Positions 21,775 through 36,061 of a stretch of 64,000 nucleotides of DNA are shown here, piece by piece. The stretch lies in NCBI RefSeq assembly GCF_006345805.1, contig NC_043001.1, forward strand, positions 121,024,001 to 121,088,000. The letters are read 5' to 3'. The notes under the pieces were generated by a model. The model ran no database searches and had not been told where the DNA came from. It worked only from the letters and a program-made list of their open reading frames with translations. Numbering within the stretch: the first letter of the stretch is position 1; every line of letters begins with the position of its first letter. The stretch is from Octopus sinensis (lineage: Eukaryota). The translations under genes and the position numbers were made by a program.

Positions 21775-21867
21775 CTATCATCTATCTATCTATCTATCTA
21801 CTTATCTATCTATCTATCTATCTATTTATCTATCTATCTATCTATCATCTATCTATCTATCTATCTA
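21775..21867 (+). repeat. (TCTA)n array, 5' flank of Tx1 copy 1
   Basis: Direct reading; preceded by (CT)n at 21731-21774. Confidence 0.95.
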
Positions 21868-23704
21868 GCCAAGAGGTTGGCGCTTGTCATCGAGAAACTG
21901 GTCGACAGGGCGCAAACATGCGCCGTGCCAGGCCGGACCATCCATGACAACCTCCATCTGATGCGCTACATCATAGACAGGGTAGTTAACGAACCTGGCA
22001 TGGGTGGGGCCCTGATCAACTTGGATCAATCGAAAGCCTTTGATAGGGTAGACCATCGATACTTGGAGGCAGTCCTGAGAGCGGCTGGTTTCGGTCCCAT
22101 CTTCCGCGGCTGGATAGCTGCCTTGTACAGGGGCATCCGTTCGGTAATTCGCGTAAATGGACATCTATCGAGACCTTTCGACATTGCACGTTCGGTCCGT
22201 CAGGGATGCCCCCTCTCGGCGCTTCTATACGTATTGACTCTTGAGCCACTACTGCGGAAGCTGGCGACTCTAGGGGCATCCCGCGAGAATTGGGATGCGG
22301 GACGAGCGTGTCTGCATACTACGCGGACGACGTCACACCGTCATAGTGTCTAGCCACGAGCACATCGAGCGGTCGGCGAGACACTGAAAATCTACGAAGC
22401 GGTGACAGGAGCGAAAATCAACCGGGAAAAGTCAGTGTGCTTGCGACTAGGCACCTGGAGAAGCAACCCATGCCGTCCACCAGCGCCTCCGTCGTGGGGG
22501 ACGCTGGACCGACGGCCCGGTTGAGTTGCTCGGGGTCTGGTTTGGTCCGGACCTCCAAGTGGAGAAGAACTGGAACGAGATAACGAGTAGGGTGGTCACT
22601 CTCGCCCGGCAATGGGCCGAGAGGAAACTGTCCCTAAAAGGTCGAGCGGAGGTGGCGAACACGTACATCGCGTCCGTCATCTACTACCGCCTGACCGTCG
22701 TACCTTGTCCCGACCCTACCATCACCAAACTACAACGCATCCTCTTTCGCTTCTTGTGGAAAGGATGCGTCCGATGGTCAGGCGATCCATTTGCTGTCAA
22801 CACCCGTTAAAAGGAGGGCTGGGCATGCCGTGGTTGATGATGCGCAGACACGCGCTGAGACTGCGACATCTCTGGCTCTATGTAGACGACGGTGAACAGG
22901 TGTGGTCGCCGTTTGTGAGGCACGCTTTCCCGCAGCTCGTCTCCATGACCGAACTGCAGTCGTGGATCAAAAAGAGGCCGAGGAAGGGCGAATGGCACCG
23001 CGAGTGTCGCGTTGCTCTCAAGCAACTCTGCCGTCCTGGGTCGACCTTAAGTGACTTCAACACAACCAAAGCATTCTATAGGGGTTTAGTGGAGGGGAGT
23101 ACGACGACGAGCTCGGGCGAAACCTGGACGTCGACGAGGAGTACCTGACCCGCCTGTTCAGGACGACTTTCGGGCCAGGCCCATGGACAACTTCCAGAGA
23201 TCCCTGGCCTGGCAGTGCTACCGAGAAGCGCTACCCGTTCGGGATAAGCTCTACAGACACGGCTCGAGAAACACGGGGCCGATCTGCCCGAGATGCGGTC
23301 AGAGCGACGAAACCGTTCTGCACGCACTCGTTCAGTGTCCAACAATTTCCGACCTGTGGGCTTATGTCGAACAACTGCTGTCACGTGTGGGACGAGTCGG
23401 TTTATCAGCTGAGTCTATCGTCAATATTGTCACGCCTCCTTCCTTCAAACGGGAAGGAAGAGCTATTTTCATCATCCTTGTGGCTATGGCGAAAGAATGT
23501 ATCTGGTGGACGCGTCTGAAAGGATTGGAGACAAACACTTTCCTCTCTGGTCAATCTCTCATCAACTTCTTCAAGTACCACTTGAAAAGGAAAGTGAGAG
23601 TAGAGAGGCAAGTTTTGTCTAGCGAATGTTTTAAAAAAAGATGGGTGAATGTAGCAAGAATGGCACGTATGAATGACGAAGCCACCTTGAGCATAATCCT
23701 ATGA
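21868..23704 (+). pseudogene. Tx1 ORF2 (RT plus C-terminal domain), 5'-truncated with a few frameshifts
   Basis: ORF-track pieces 21694-22353, 22526-22810, 22612-23148 and 23183-23704 join into one RT-CTD reading. The frameshifts may be consensus errors. Confidence 0.85.
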
Positions 23705-24079
23705 ACCCAGAAATTGAAAACAGAGAGTTGCTTATTTGCAAAAAAAAAAAAAAAAAAAAAGAAATATAAAATGTGACTTCATTGACCGAGGTTACCGTGG
23801 TCTTTTCCGTAGGCTTTTCTTTCCACGGGTAAACCTCACCTGTCTCCCCTTTACACTTCATATTGACATTCCTGTGATAACGATCCCTATTGATCAATTT
23901 TTTTTCCTCTCCCCTTGTTTTTTTAACCCCCCTTTTTTGTCCTCTTTCTCTCCTTTTACGATCCCTTTTGATCGAAACTCCCCCTTCCTTTTTTTTTTTT
24001 TTTTTAAACCTTCAAAAGAAAAGCTCTACCTTGTAATTTGTTCTATCTGTGTGCAGCCCTGTGTGGCTAATAAAGAAAC
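21868..24079 (+). mobile_element. Tx1/L1-clade non-LTR retrotransposon, copy 1 (5'-truncated within RT)
   Basis: RT motifs QTCAVPGRTIHDNLHL, LDQSKAFDRVDH, VRQGCPLS, YADD (tacgcggacgac), then the C-terminal zinc-binding region CPRCGQSDETVLHALVQC, stop at 23704, and a 3' UTR ending AATAAAGAAAC. Confidence 0.95.
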
Positions 24080-24572
24080 ATCTATCTATCTATCTATCAT
24101 CTATCTATCTATCTATCTACTTATCTATCTATCTACCTATCTATCTACTTATCTATCTATCTACCTATCTATCTATCTATCTATCTATCTATCATCTATC
24201 AATCTATCTATCTATCTACTTATCTATCTATCTACCTATCTATCTATCTATCTATCTATCTATCATCTATCTATCTATCTATCTATCTATCTATCTATCT
24301 ATCTATATCTATCTATCTATCTATCTATCTATCTATATCTATCTATCTATCTATCTATCTATATCTATCTATCTATCTATCTACTTATCTATCTATCTAC
24401 CTATCTATCTATCTATCTATCTATCTATCTATCTATCTATCTATCTATCTATCTATCTATCATCTATCTATCTATCTATCTATCTATCTATCTATCTATC
24501 TATATCTATCTATCTATCTATCTATCTATCTATCTATCTATCTATCTATCTATCTATCTATCTATCTATCTA
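24080..24572 (+). repeat. (TCTA)n array of about 490 bp, 3' flank of Tx1 copy 1
   Basis: Direct reading, with CTTA, CCTA, TATA and TCA variants. Confidence 0.97.
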
Positions 24573-33310: not shown

Positions 33311-33352
33311 GTTCCGATAAAAGTGCAAAAAAGGAAAAGGAGAGAGAAAAGG

Positions 33353-35539
33353 TTACTTGTTTTTCGAAAGTTCTTTGTCTTTCACCTCACGGTCTTCTTC
33401 TATGAGGCTTTTATACAGTTTGTTTTTCGATGAGTACTTTTGAAATCTCCCTACTGCATCAGGGTAAGAGATTCAGGGTGCTGTATGTGTTCTGTGTCAC
33501 GTGTATTATTTTAATGTGTTGTGGTGGTGTTGTGTGTGGGTGGTTACTTGTTTTTATGTCGTTTTCAGTAATGTTAGTGTTTGACCTAATGTGTTCCATT
33601 AGGTCGTGGTTGTTTGTGTTTATGGCTGTCAACATTTTGGGGGGTTTGATGATGGTGTTTTGTGTTGATGTGTGTGTTTTCTGTGGATGTTTTGTTTCGG
33701 GAGTGGTGTATCTTCCCGCTTTGTTTGATTATTTTTCTTTTCTTTTTTTTCCCTTTTTCTTCTCCCCCCTGTGGCTATTTGCCAATCTTCCGTGTCTTCT
33801 TCGTCTAAGACAGATCAGACGAATCGGAGTCTGGAAGAGGGAAAGTATTGGGGTCTATTGTCGACTGTGTTGGTTTTGTTGTGGTGTTGGTTGGTGAGCG
33901 TTTGGTGTGGTGTATGCGGTTTGGATGTGGGGTTTGGGTATTTTGTGTTTGAGTGATTGTGGGTATTGTTGTGTTGTTTAGGGTCTCAATTTTGTGGGGA
34001 TTTGGAGTTGTAATTGGTTTCTTCATTTTTGCTGGGGTCTTTTTGGCAGATGTCCTTGGTTTGGGAGTTGGTATTCTTGGTTGTTGTTGTTGGTGATGCT
34101 GCTTCTGTTCTTGGTGCTGCAGTTGGGGTGGTGTGTTTGTTTGGTGAGGTTTGTTCCTGCAAAAAGTGGGGTGGGTAGTAAACCTTGTTTATTGTTTTTG
34201 TTTCGGCTGCCGGCTGCTGTTGTTGTTGCTGTTGTTTCTTGCGGCAGATTTGCAGTCTTTTTTTAGGTGTTGCTCACTGCCGCATATGTAGCAACGTGGT
34301 CTTCTGCCATCGACGACCACATATAACTTGTGGTCGTCTGATACACATATCTGGGTGGGTATTTTTTTTATATCTTCATGATGATATATGTAGAAGAAAT
34401 TCTACTTTTTTCCCACCCAGTTTTTATGCTCTGTGACTGTGGGTTTCCAAATAGTATAATTCGCCATTTTTACGCATAAGGCCTTACAAGCCATAGACTA
34501 TTGGCTATTTTGGGGACATTGTTTAGAGTGATCTTAGTCACTTTCTGTCCCCGATAGCTTGGTGTAAGTTGGAGTTCATCTGAGTGAAGAGTTAGCGTTG
34601 AGAAATGTCTAGCTAACTCTTCGGTTGTAGAAAACCAACTTGTATGTGGGCAAATTTGTTCCACCAGGTTACATATTCTTTGTGATCCCAGATGGGTTTC
34701 AAGCACTTCTCTATTTTGCTTGTGTTGGCCTTCTCTGGGATTTTTGTTTTTTTGTTAATATTTTATAAATGATTGTTCGTCTTTTTTCATTTTCCAAAAT
34801 GTCTTCTGGTATGTTTATTTTTACTATACCTTCTGATTCTGTTATTTTGATGTTCGTGTCCTGTATTTGTTGAGCCGTAAAGTATATTGTTGTTTTTTTT
34901 TCTTAATCGCCTCAGCGAAATTTGTTGTGTTTTGTTATTGTTGTTGCTTGTGGTGATGTGGTTGTTGGCTGCAGTTTGTAAAATTGGTGTTGTTTGGTTC
35001 GATTGTGCAGAGTAGGAAGGGGTGGAAAATTGCCTGCGTACTAGTCCTGCACTAGGGCAAATTTCGACATTTCGTTTGCTTGTCGTCGTTATTTTTTCAC
35101 TTGTTGTTGGTGATGGAGTGAGCAGTGTTGGTTGAAGGGAATTGTTGTTGGTCGTCGTGGTGTTGTTTTGTTGTTGTTGTTGTTGTTGTGTTATTGTCGT
35201 TCTTGGGGTGACGGCGGTGGTGTTAGTAGTATTAGTAGCATTGACCGCACGGTCTTTGGTGGCGGTGGTGGTGATGGTTGTATGTTGTATTGTTATTGGT
35301 GGCGATATCTTTAGTAGGGGGATAGCAGTTTTTAGTAGTAGATTCTGCCATGGTGTTGGTGGTGGTGGTGGACTCACTGATGGTGTTGACGGTGCTTGGC
35401 CTTGCGACCTTGGTTTGTATTTGTTGCTTTTGATGGTGGTGGAGTTGTCAGGTTCGGCGTATGCTAACAGAGCATCCTGTTTTTCTGTTTTCTGCGTCAC
35501 GCTTGACTTGCACTCAGCCTCGTGGTGGCCAGTGGCCAT
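33353..35539 (-). pseudogene. Tx1 ORF1 (Thr/Asn/Pro-rich, CCHC zinc knuckle), frameshifted in this assembly
   Basis: Starts MATGHHEAE (35539); VVDGRRPRCYICGSEQHLKKDCK at about 34320-34250; probable end ..EEDREVKDKELSKNK* at 33353. Confidence 0.75.
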
Positions 35540-35762
35540 TTTGGAAATAAAATGGCTAAGTTGAAACCACGAAGGCTATGAGAATTTTTTCTTTTAAATT
35601 TTGCCCACAAGGGGCAAAATTTTGTGTCGATATTTATCAAAGGTTTACAGTGGATGTTGTTGCACAACTTTTAAGCACAAAATGTTTGTCAATATACACT
35701 TTTGAAACGTACAAAAATACCAAACTTACGTGGAGCCCATTTGACTGCGTCCGTCGTCTGTC

Positions 35763-36061
35763 AGATAGATAGATAGATAGATAGATAGATAGATAGATAG
35801 ATAGATAGATAGATAGATAGATAGATAGATAGATAGATAGTTGATAGATAGGTGGTAGGGTAGGTAGGTAGGTAGATAGATAGATAGATAGATAGATAGA
35901 TAGATAGATAGAATAGATAGATAGATAGATAGATAGATAGATAGATAGATAGATAGATAGACAGACAGATAGATAGATGATAGATAGATAGATAGATAGA
36001 TAGATAGATAGATAGATAGATAGATAGATAGATGGATGGATGGATGGATGGACGGACGGAC
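35763..36061 (-). repeat. (TAGA)n array grading into (GATG)/(GACG), 5' flank of Tx1 copy 3
   Basis: Direct reading. Confidence 0.95.

Follow-up and report, generated by a model that had tools for sequence, protein, structure and literature searches.

The stretch of DNA analysed here, a window of 64,000 nucleotides of Octopus sinensis (contig NC_043001.1, positions 121,024,001 to 121,088,000), contains three copies of one family of long interspersed nuclear elements (LINEs), each of which is bordered by (TCTA)n microsatellites. The question raised by this locus is whether these arrays were the target of the insertions or whether they are tails that the elements made themselves. An earlier interpretation, referred to below as the sequence-only reading, had proposed a retrotransposon of the Tx1 clade that targets such repeats. 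Following up this proposal, we consider it likely that the copies represent an octopod lineage of LINEs of the L1/Tx1 group, encoding an apurinic/apyrimidinic endonuclease (APE), which integrate by target-primed reverse transcription preferentially in (TCTA)n.(TAGA)n, including the tails of earlier copies. Insertion into arrays in a fixed orientation was supported, and the association with TCTA was found to recur in relatives of the family, while the alternative that the repeats are tails proved to be partly true as well.

The three copies (c1, c2 and c3) were assigned to one family by self-BLAST of the window and direct reading of their junctions. With Tandem Repeats Finder (TRF), eight TCTA-type arrays were detected, which make up 3.2% of the bases of the window; five of them lie in the region of the three copies and three elsewhere. 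Copy c1 (21868-24079, + strand; self-BLAST and domain search) is 5'-truncated in the reverse transcriptase (RT) domain. It is preceded by a (TCTA)n array (21775-21867, +), which merges upstream into a compound microsatellite of (TC)n/(TCCC)n, and followed by a second one of 493 bp (24080-24572, +). Copies c2 and c3 are located on the - strand, which is also the strand on which their arrays read (TCTA)n in the sense orientation. Copy c2 (28864-29968) is 5'-truncated in the C-terminal domain and carries many 1-bp indels; its 3' array of 472 bp (28391-28862) contains ATCA variant units as punctuation. The same punctuation is found in the array at 29969-30153, which is at once the 5' flank of c2 and the 3' flank of c3. 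The latter copy (30155-35762) is near full-length, with 80-82% nucleotide identity to an intact sister element on contig L010, and its 5' array (35763-36049) runs without a break into compound repeats of (ATCC)n, (GTCC)n and (CTG)n. The six TCTA junctions described in the sequence-only reading are thus all present, but they belong to five arrays and not to separate ones, as the 5' array of c2 is the 3' array of c3.

Copy c1 comprises RT, a 617-bp stretch (22432-23049) that is missing from c3, a C-terminal zf-RVT domain and a 3' untranslated region that terminates in ...GGCTAATAAAGAAAC; its domain matches are RVT_1 (E=2.7e-14) and zf-RVT (E=4.7e-08). In c3, a leader of 223 nt upstream of the ATG of open reading frame 1 (ORF1) is followed by ORF1 with a CCHC knuckle (34192-34401), APE remnants (~32571-33288), RT (~31162-32006) and the C-terminal domain (30512-31187), and position 35762 is plausibly the true 5' end of the element. 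This copy is damaged by many frameshifts and by an internal deletion of ~617 bp at ~31163, with AAGT microhomology at the deletion edges. All three copies share the 3' terminus ...GTGTGGCTAATAA(A)GAAAC (equivalent to ...CAGCCCTGTGTGGCTAATAA(A)GAAAC), after which the sense strand continues with AT(AT)CTATCT.... Over the aligned positions of the common 3' 1 kb, identities of 98.1% (c1-c3), 94.7% (c1-c2) and 95.4% (c2-c3) were obtained, the differences being mostly 1-bp indels, and the RT parts of c1 and c3 are just 86.7% identical (BLAST). A common 3' end combined with three different internal 5' starts amounts to variable 5' truncation. The 5' starts given before were confirmed: c1 starts in RT and overlaps the array by 2 nt (TA), c2 starts in the C-terminal domain and overlaps its array by 1 nt (T), and c3 starts with the leader. 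Relative to c1, very many single-base indels are found in c2 and c3, notably at homopolymers; these may be long-read assembly errors and not real decay, in which case the copies would be younger and more intact than they appear.

Several features of the window bear on whether the arrays were there before the elements. (TCTA)n is found on both sides of each copy, always on the sense strand of the element, which confirms the orientation given earlier (3/3 copies, junctions read directly), and the copies are spread over two separate array systems. The unique DNA flanking c1, c2 and c3 is unrelated, and the halves of the inter-copy region show no mutual similarity. An inverted or segmental duplication of c1/c2 was ruled out on these grounds. 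Together with the differing 5' ends, this upholds the earlier claim of independent insertions over one duplicated block, with the adjacency of c2 and c3 as a caveat. If the arrays are written as ATCT runs, the variant units ATC and ACTT are common to both arrays of c1, and a regular ATCA punctuation is common to both arrays of c2, the variant structure of which differs from that of the c1 system. The sharing of variant units across each element points to arrays split by insertion, not to generic or freshly made tails. At the 5' arrays of c1 and c3, no upstream 3' end of a LINE or of a short interspersed nuclear element (SINE) was found by junction reading; both arrays grade into other microsatellites and resemble ordinary compound microsatellites. 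Since the flanks are unrelated, the 5' ends differ and variant units are shared across each element, we conclude that c1, c2 and c3 are probably insertions into arrays that were already there. TCTA arrays also occur without the element, because the three arrays elsewhere in the window are empty: one at 52098-52265 (-), which has no adjoining family sequence and is a possible empty target, and two at 52892-53019 (-) and 58462-58681 (+; all TRF). The other L1/Tx1-like fragments of the window (6493-7336, and 39463-40266 with 45817-46612) do not adjoin TCTA.

After removal of the elements, TCTA accounts for 2046 bp of the remaining 55,075 bp (3.7%). From this share, random insertion would place all three copies in TCTA with p ~5e-5, or with p ~1.4e-3 if only the two array systems are counted (c2 and c3 as one), both values being uncorrected for the fact that the window was chosen after the pattern had been seen. 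In c1, the 5' array ends with the same 40 nt with which the 3' array begins. A 40-bp target-site duplication is suggested by this match and not proven, as the 40-mer occurs twice more inside the 3' array. The flank matches of c3 (76 nt) and c2 (17 nt) consist of pure repeat and are uninformative on target-site duplication.

The sister element on the ENA contig L010 provided an intact ORF2 of 1148 aa (P0161) with APE, RT and zf-RVT, for which matches to Exo_endo_phos (E=3.3e-15) and RVT_1 (E=4.1e-31) were obtained. At the nucleotide level it is 80-84% identical to the window copies, and the APE region of c3 aligns to it at 80%. With RVT_1 in c1 and both Exo_endo_phos and RVT_1 in P0161, the family is, as judged by its domains, an APE-type retrotransposon without long terminal repeats, i.e. 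a LINE. In structure databases the top PDB match of the RT was human L1 ORF2p (E=3e-44, vs 6e-20 for R2), a similarity ranking and not a phylogeny, and zf-RVT as well as the zf-CCHC knuckle of ORF1 are features of the L1 group. This ranking shows an affinity to the L1 group (L1 and Tx1 clades) at the level of sequence similarity, within which the Tx1 clade itself is a candidate. No match named Tx1 or L1 was present among the database hits of the protein searches. Octopus genomes have been reported to harbor active 'L1-Tx1' families, which is consistent with a Tx1 placement and is not a test of it.

In protein searches, an octopod-restricted group was apparent, with 60-80% identity inside the group vs ~50% or less for the next matches. 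The nearest relatives of the window family were found in Argonauta hians and in octopod-like contigs, in line with the cephalopod host inferred in the sequence-only reading. Scans of JGI metagenome contigs and GTDB genomes with a profile of the C-terminal domain yielded 34%-identical relatives or none. The element on L010 ends in ...GTGGCCAATAAAGAAA and continues with TCTA repeats up to the contig end, which can also be written ...AATAAAGAAA(TCTA)n. Cephalopod LINE sequences occur in several public metagenome assemblies (L002, L008, L010 and L011 from ENA, L009 from JGI 3300045642), and P0122, an NCBI entry named 'MAG: zinc-binding domain-containing protein [Herbaspirillum sp.]' from a bacterial metagenome-assembled genome, is 62% identical to ORF2 of the window element. 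The presence of cephalopod LINEs in such data is host DNA contamination or mis-binning.

Two diverged TCTA-ending copies, A and B, are located at locus L013 of Argonauta hians. Copy A terminates in ...AATAAAGAAA(TCTA)5, i.e. ...GAAA(TCTA)5, and copy B in ...AATAAAGAAACATA(TCTA)14 (also given as ...GAAACATA(TCTA)14), with the same junction as in c2 and c3. The 163 bp that follow the array of A (12808-12970) are found again behind the array of B (18917-19079) with 98.7% identity. The simplest reading of this repeat would be a long target-site duplication composed of TCTA units and the 163 bp, as unique DNA; on this reading, priming of copy B would have taken place in the existing TCTA array of A, with the second nick 163 bp downstream. 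In the sequence-only reading, a majority of non-TCTA 5' flanks had been taken to disprove targeting. This criterion is flawed, because copy B was apparently primed in TCTA and nevertheless has its 5' junction 163 bp outside.

Taken over all TCTA-type copies (the three of the window, L010, L013 A and L013 B), the 3' flank is (TCTA)n in 6/6 cases, and TCTA is the sense strand in all six. Of the four 5' flanks, three are (TCTA)n and one is separated from an array by 163 bp. The working criterion for a target-specific LINE, one sequence type in >20% of the flanks of a family (Kojima, PMC4494074), is exceeded in this small, non-random sample. The window copies and L013 B have the 3' register GAAAC(AT)/ATCT, and L010 and L013 A have GAAA/TCTA (the slash marks the junction).

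Other relatives end in a different repeat. Among the ATT-type sister families, L009 terminates in ...AAAAGAAATC(ATT)n with n of at least 33. At L012 of Argonauta hians (1-19665, BAAFZT010000048.1), at least four ATT-type LINE copies of ~6 kb are arranged head-to-tail with (ATT)4-13 between them; three are full-length, and another is truncated by the edge of the locus. Units 2 and 3 are 99.7% identical, and the 5' 1.7 kb of unit 1 is unlike that of units 2 and 3; because of this different 5' part, the array is not a plain duplication. At L001 (4832-5360), also from Argonauta hians, three SINEs in tandem lie between the (TTA)18 tail of an older LINE and a full-length LINE ending in (ATT)4, an order suggestive of repeated insertion into the same tail or of template switching within a single event. 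A further Argonauta copy, L003, has a repeat-less 3' end. Contigs L002, L004 and L008 gave no junction, as they end before the 3' end or diverge from it. In a neighbor-joining tree of RT and C-terminal residues, calculated without bootstrap and with window-copy translations stitched across frameshifts, two TCTA groups are basal in the octopod clade and the ATT families are nested inside.

What has to be explained is that the orientation is fixed and the 3' register constant, that the 5' ends vary and overlap by 1-2 nt, that the repeats are family-specific and that copies form head-to-tail arrays. Under the preferred model, the TAGA strand would be nicked first, between two AGAT units. The ...AGAT-3' end exposed in this way would pair with the terminal AU(CU) of the RNA, or with a short (UCUA)n tail produced by read-through, and would then prime cDNA synthesis; a single nick position would be compatible with GAAAC/ATCT as well as with GAAACAT/ATCT, depending on whether a 2-nt overlap is present. 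The second nick would follow at a variable distance downstream. If it fell inside a long array, TCTA would result on both sides, and if it fell beyond a short array, a long duplication would be produced. The RNA itself probably carries some repeat units, as judged from relatives in which tails of 4-5 units are followed by unique DNA. Because such short tails occur, 'tail' and 'target' can both be true: the family deposits TCTA tails and inserts preferentially into TCTA arrays, its own tails among them.

If the (TCTA)n were nothing but a 3' tail, made by the element itself through read-through or RT slippage, insertion would be essentially random, and TCTA at 5' junctions would have to stem from copies that landed by chance behind other tails or from short duplicated seeds that expanded after insertion. 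Such an origin would account for the family-specific microsatellite exactly at the 3' end of every relative, for the 4-5 units followed by unique DNA in L013 A, unit 3 of L012 and copy B of L001, and for the tail of c3 being the 5' array of c2. Further, the arrays that adjoin elements measure 93-493 bp and include the longest of the window, the empty ones 128-220 bp, and the 3' ends of Argonauta SINEs and LINEs, ...GAAATCT(AT), could have served as a seed for TCTA tails. However, no element lies upstream of the 5' array in c1 or in c3, both arrays being part of compound natural microsatellites, and array-specific variant units flank c1 on both sides and likewise c2. Independent expansion after insertion would not reproduce shared variants, and the duplication of L013 B holds unique DNA in addition to TCTA. 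A tail as the sole explanation is therefore regarded as improbable. A regional artefact, i.e. passive build-up in a TCTA-rich and repeat-dense region, or a segmental or inverted duplication of one insertion, would agree with the unusual TCTA content of the window and with c1 and c2 facing one another with 3' arrays of near-equal length. The duplication version is largely refuted by the unique flanks and the dissimilar inter-copy halves. The different variant structures of the c1 and c2 arrays, the three distinct 5' truncation points and the recurrence of the association in unrelated contigs and in another species make a regional origin very unlikely altogether. We give next to no credence to long-read mis-joins at microsatellites that placed LINE fragments between TCTA arrays: long arrays are difficult to assemble, and c2 and c3 are rich in the 1-bp indels typical of uncorrected long reads, but the junctions are precise and of constant register in 3/3 copies, the independent Argonauta assembly also has the junction GAAACATATCTATCT, and an ENA contig likewise shows a TCTA end.

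A number of points weigh against preferential insertion into TCTA. Within pure repeats, a target-site duplication is indistinguishable from the periodicity of the array, as seen from the recurring 40-mer of c1. The TCTA-type copies number six and are not a genome-wide unbiased sample, and the window was singled out on account of the pattern itself. Copies c2 and c3 are adjacent and possibly not independent events, and the relatives with 4-5 repeat units followed by unique DNA look as expected for a templated tail. The 163-bp repeat of L013 could also be the 5' end or leader of a third, broken copy; in a comparison of the 5' leaders, those of the families were too diverged to tell flank from leader. 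An element junction in a TCTA array is obtained at L013 either way, because the third-copy reading also puts a 5' junction in TCTA.

As to the source of the specificity, the endonuclease or the pairing between RNA and target may be responsible, and the analogy with Bombyx R1, SART1 and TRAS1 suggests the endonuclease. A tRNA-derived SINE, abundant in Argonauta and in the window, has a bearing on this point. This SINE and the LINE lineage have the terminal ~45 nt in common (...GGCCCTTGTGGCTAATAGAGAAATCT), the common 3' box being ...GGCCCTTGTGG[C/G]TA[A/G]TA[A/G]AGAAAT.... In the window, the SINE is present at 11428-11791 as two tandem units with a period of 184, and a 3' end is located at 18286-18301; many copies were found at the Argonauta loci L001 and L003. 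The SINE copies do not lie in TCTA arrays, and those of Argonauta are at dispersed sites with duplications starting with AT. Because the last ~45 nt are shared, the LINE lineage is the likely partner and driver of this very abundant octopod SINE. No conserved hairpin was detected in the shared 3' box, for which RNAalifold predicts no pairs; the conservation is one of sequence only. Dispersed, AT-starting sites of a tail-less SINE would fit a permissive endonuclease, but the partner family of this SINE is probably of the repeat-less L003 type. It is conceivable, though we hold this only tentatively, that the target is set mainly by pairing of a read-through RNA tail with the nicked DNA and that the endonuclease needs only AT at the nick. 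If so, a change of the tail alone could switch the target from TCTA to ATT, the elements would be naturally RNA-programmable integrators, and the occurrence of a SINE with the common 3' box, without a repeat tail and at dispersed AT-starting sites would be explained.

Further repeats were recorded in the window. A second, different L1/Tx1-like element occupies 39463-46612; its APE and RT N-terminus (39463-40266) are separated from the remaining RT (45817-46612) by about three tandem copies of a unit of ~2.57 kb (landmarks 40629, 43198 and 45773). A third L1/Tx1-like fragment (6493-7336, -) represents a C-terminal region with 33-57% aa identity to P0007/P0008 and has no microsatellite nearby. 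Directly beyond the 5' array of c3, a (CCA)n array of 1.4 kb (36473-37904, ~478 units) is located, and a 584-aa 'ORF' at 36355-38109 is merely this repeat. Other tandem repeats are a 157-bp repeat in 2.4 copies with 98% identity (9691-10062), a (TATG)18 array (47165-47237), a long C/T-rich minisatellite (47452-48586) with 33-35-bp units (CCTCGGACTTTTCCAGGAAGT...) and higher-order periods of 65-131 bp, and a (GAT)70 array (51478-51687).

If the association is confirmed genome-wide, microsatellite-dwelling APE-type LINEs would be present in cephalopods in addition to fish, crocodilians and insects. Octopod families with differing repeats (TCTA, ATT or none), together with the intact ORF2 P0161, constitute a natural experiment on the roles of the endonuclease and of the RNA 3' end. 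In practical terms, tetranucleotide microsatellite loci of octopus may be interrupted or flanked by LINE sequence, and long TCTA arrays and head-to-tail LINE arrays will be especially prone to misassembly.

In some LINEs, among them the eel element UnaL2 and the I factor, the 3' tail is a short tandem repeat and priming depends on this tail. In RTE-type elements as well, a microsatellite forms the 3' end (PMC9115989, PMC2887409). The octopod LINEs resemble these elements in having a family-specific simple repeat right after a conserved 3' box, which in octopods is common to a SINE. The repeats of RTE-type elements, UnaL2 and the I factor are, however, treated as tails and not as targets, whereas the octopod arrays are also found at 5' junctions and inside a duplication with unique DNA. 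In R1Bm, SART1 and TRAS1 of Bombyx, the position of insertion is determined by the specificity of the endonuclease, and the junction is made more precise by target sequence that the RNA carries at its 3' end as a result of read-through. These elements provide the likely working model for the octopod lineage, with a specific nick, pairing of RNA and target, precise 3' junctions and variable 5' junctions. They differ in belonging to another clade and in targeting 28S rDNA or telomeric repeats.

Insertion into microsatellites is established for several LINEs. Waldo at (ACAY)n and Mino at (AC)n belong to the R1 clade and Dong at (TAA)n to the R4 clade (PMC3812793); Dong and Togen, the latter at (TG)n, insert into microsatellites with a restriction-like endonuclease. 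As in the octopod LINEs, insertion of Waldo, Mino and Dong occurs into a microsatellite and the repeat flanks the element, and the TAA target of Dong resembles the (ATT)n of the octopod sister families. Unlike the octopod LINEs, which have an APE domain and an RT nearest to L1 ORF2p, they come from other clades, with a restriction-like endonuclease in R4. Among Tx1-clade elements, Kibi at (TC)n and Koshi at (TTC)n of teleosts are described in passages of PMC3812793 and PMC4494074 that summarise Kojima & Fujiwara 2004, and crocodilian Tx1 families prefer (TTCC)n or (TTTC)n (PMC3812793, PMC4494074). Like the octopod LINEs, these elements encode APE, belong to the L1 group and are inserted in a particular microsatellite, and the motif differs between related families, as it does between the TCTA and ATT families of octopods. 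The octopod LINEs appear to be set apart by the motifs TCTA and ATT and by a cephalopod mollusc as host; their head-to-tail arrays and long duplications are documented for a handful of copies only. In the literature we found neither an L1/Tx1-type LINE specific for TCTA/GATA or ATT nor a microsatellite-specific LINE of cephalopods, a search that left Repbase Reports and Dfam outside, so that earlier cataloguing is possible. The novelty suggested in the sequence-only reading may accordingly hold for the motif and the host group; as a category, microsatellite-specific LINEs of the L1/Tx1 type were already recognised. With a motif and a host group that were not found described, the octopod family probably joins this established class of microsatellite-targeting LINEs.

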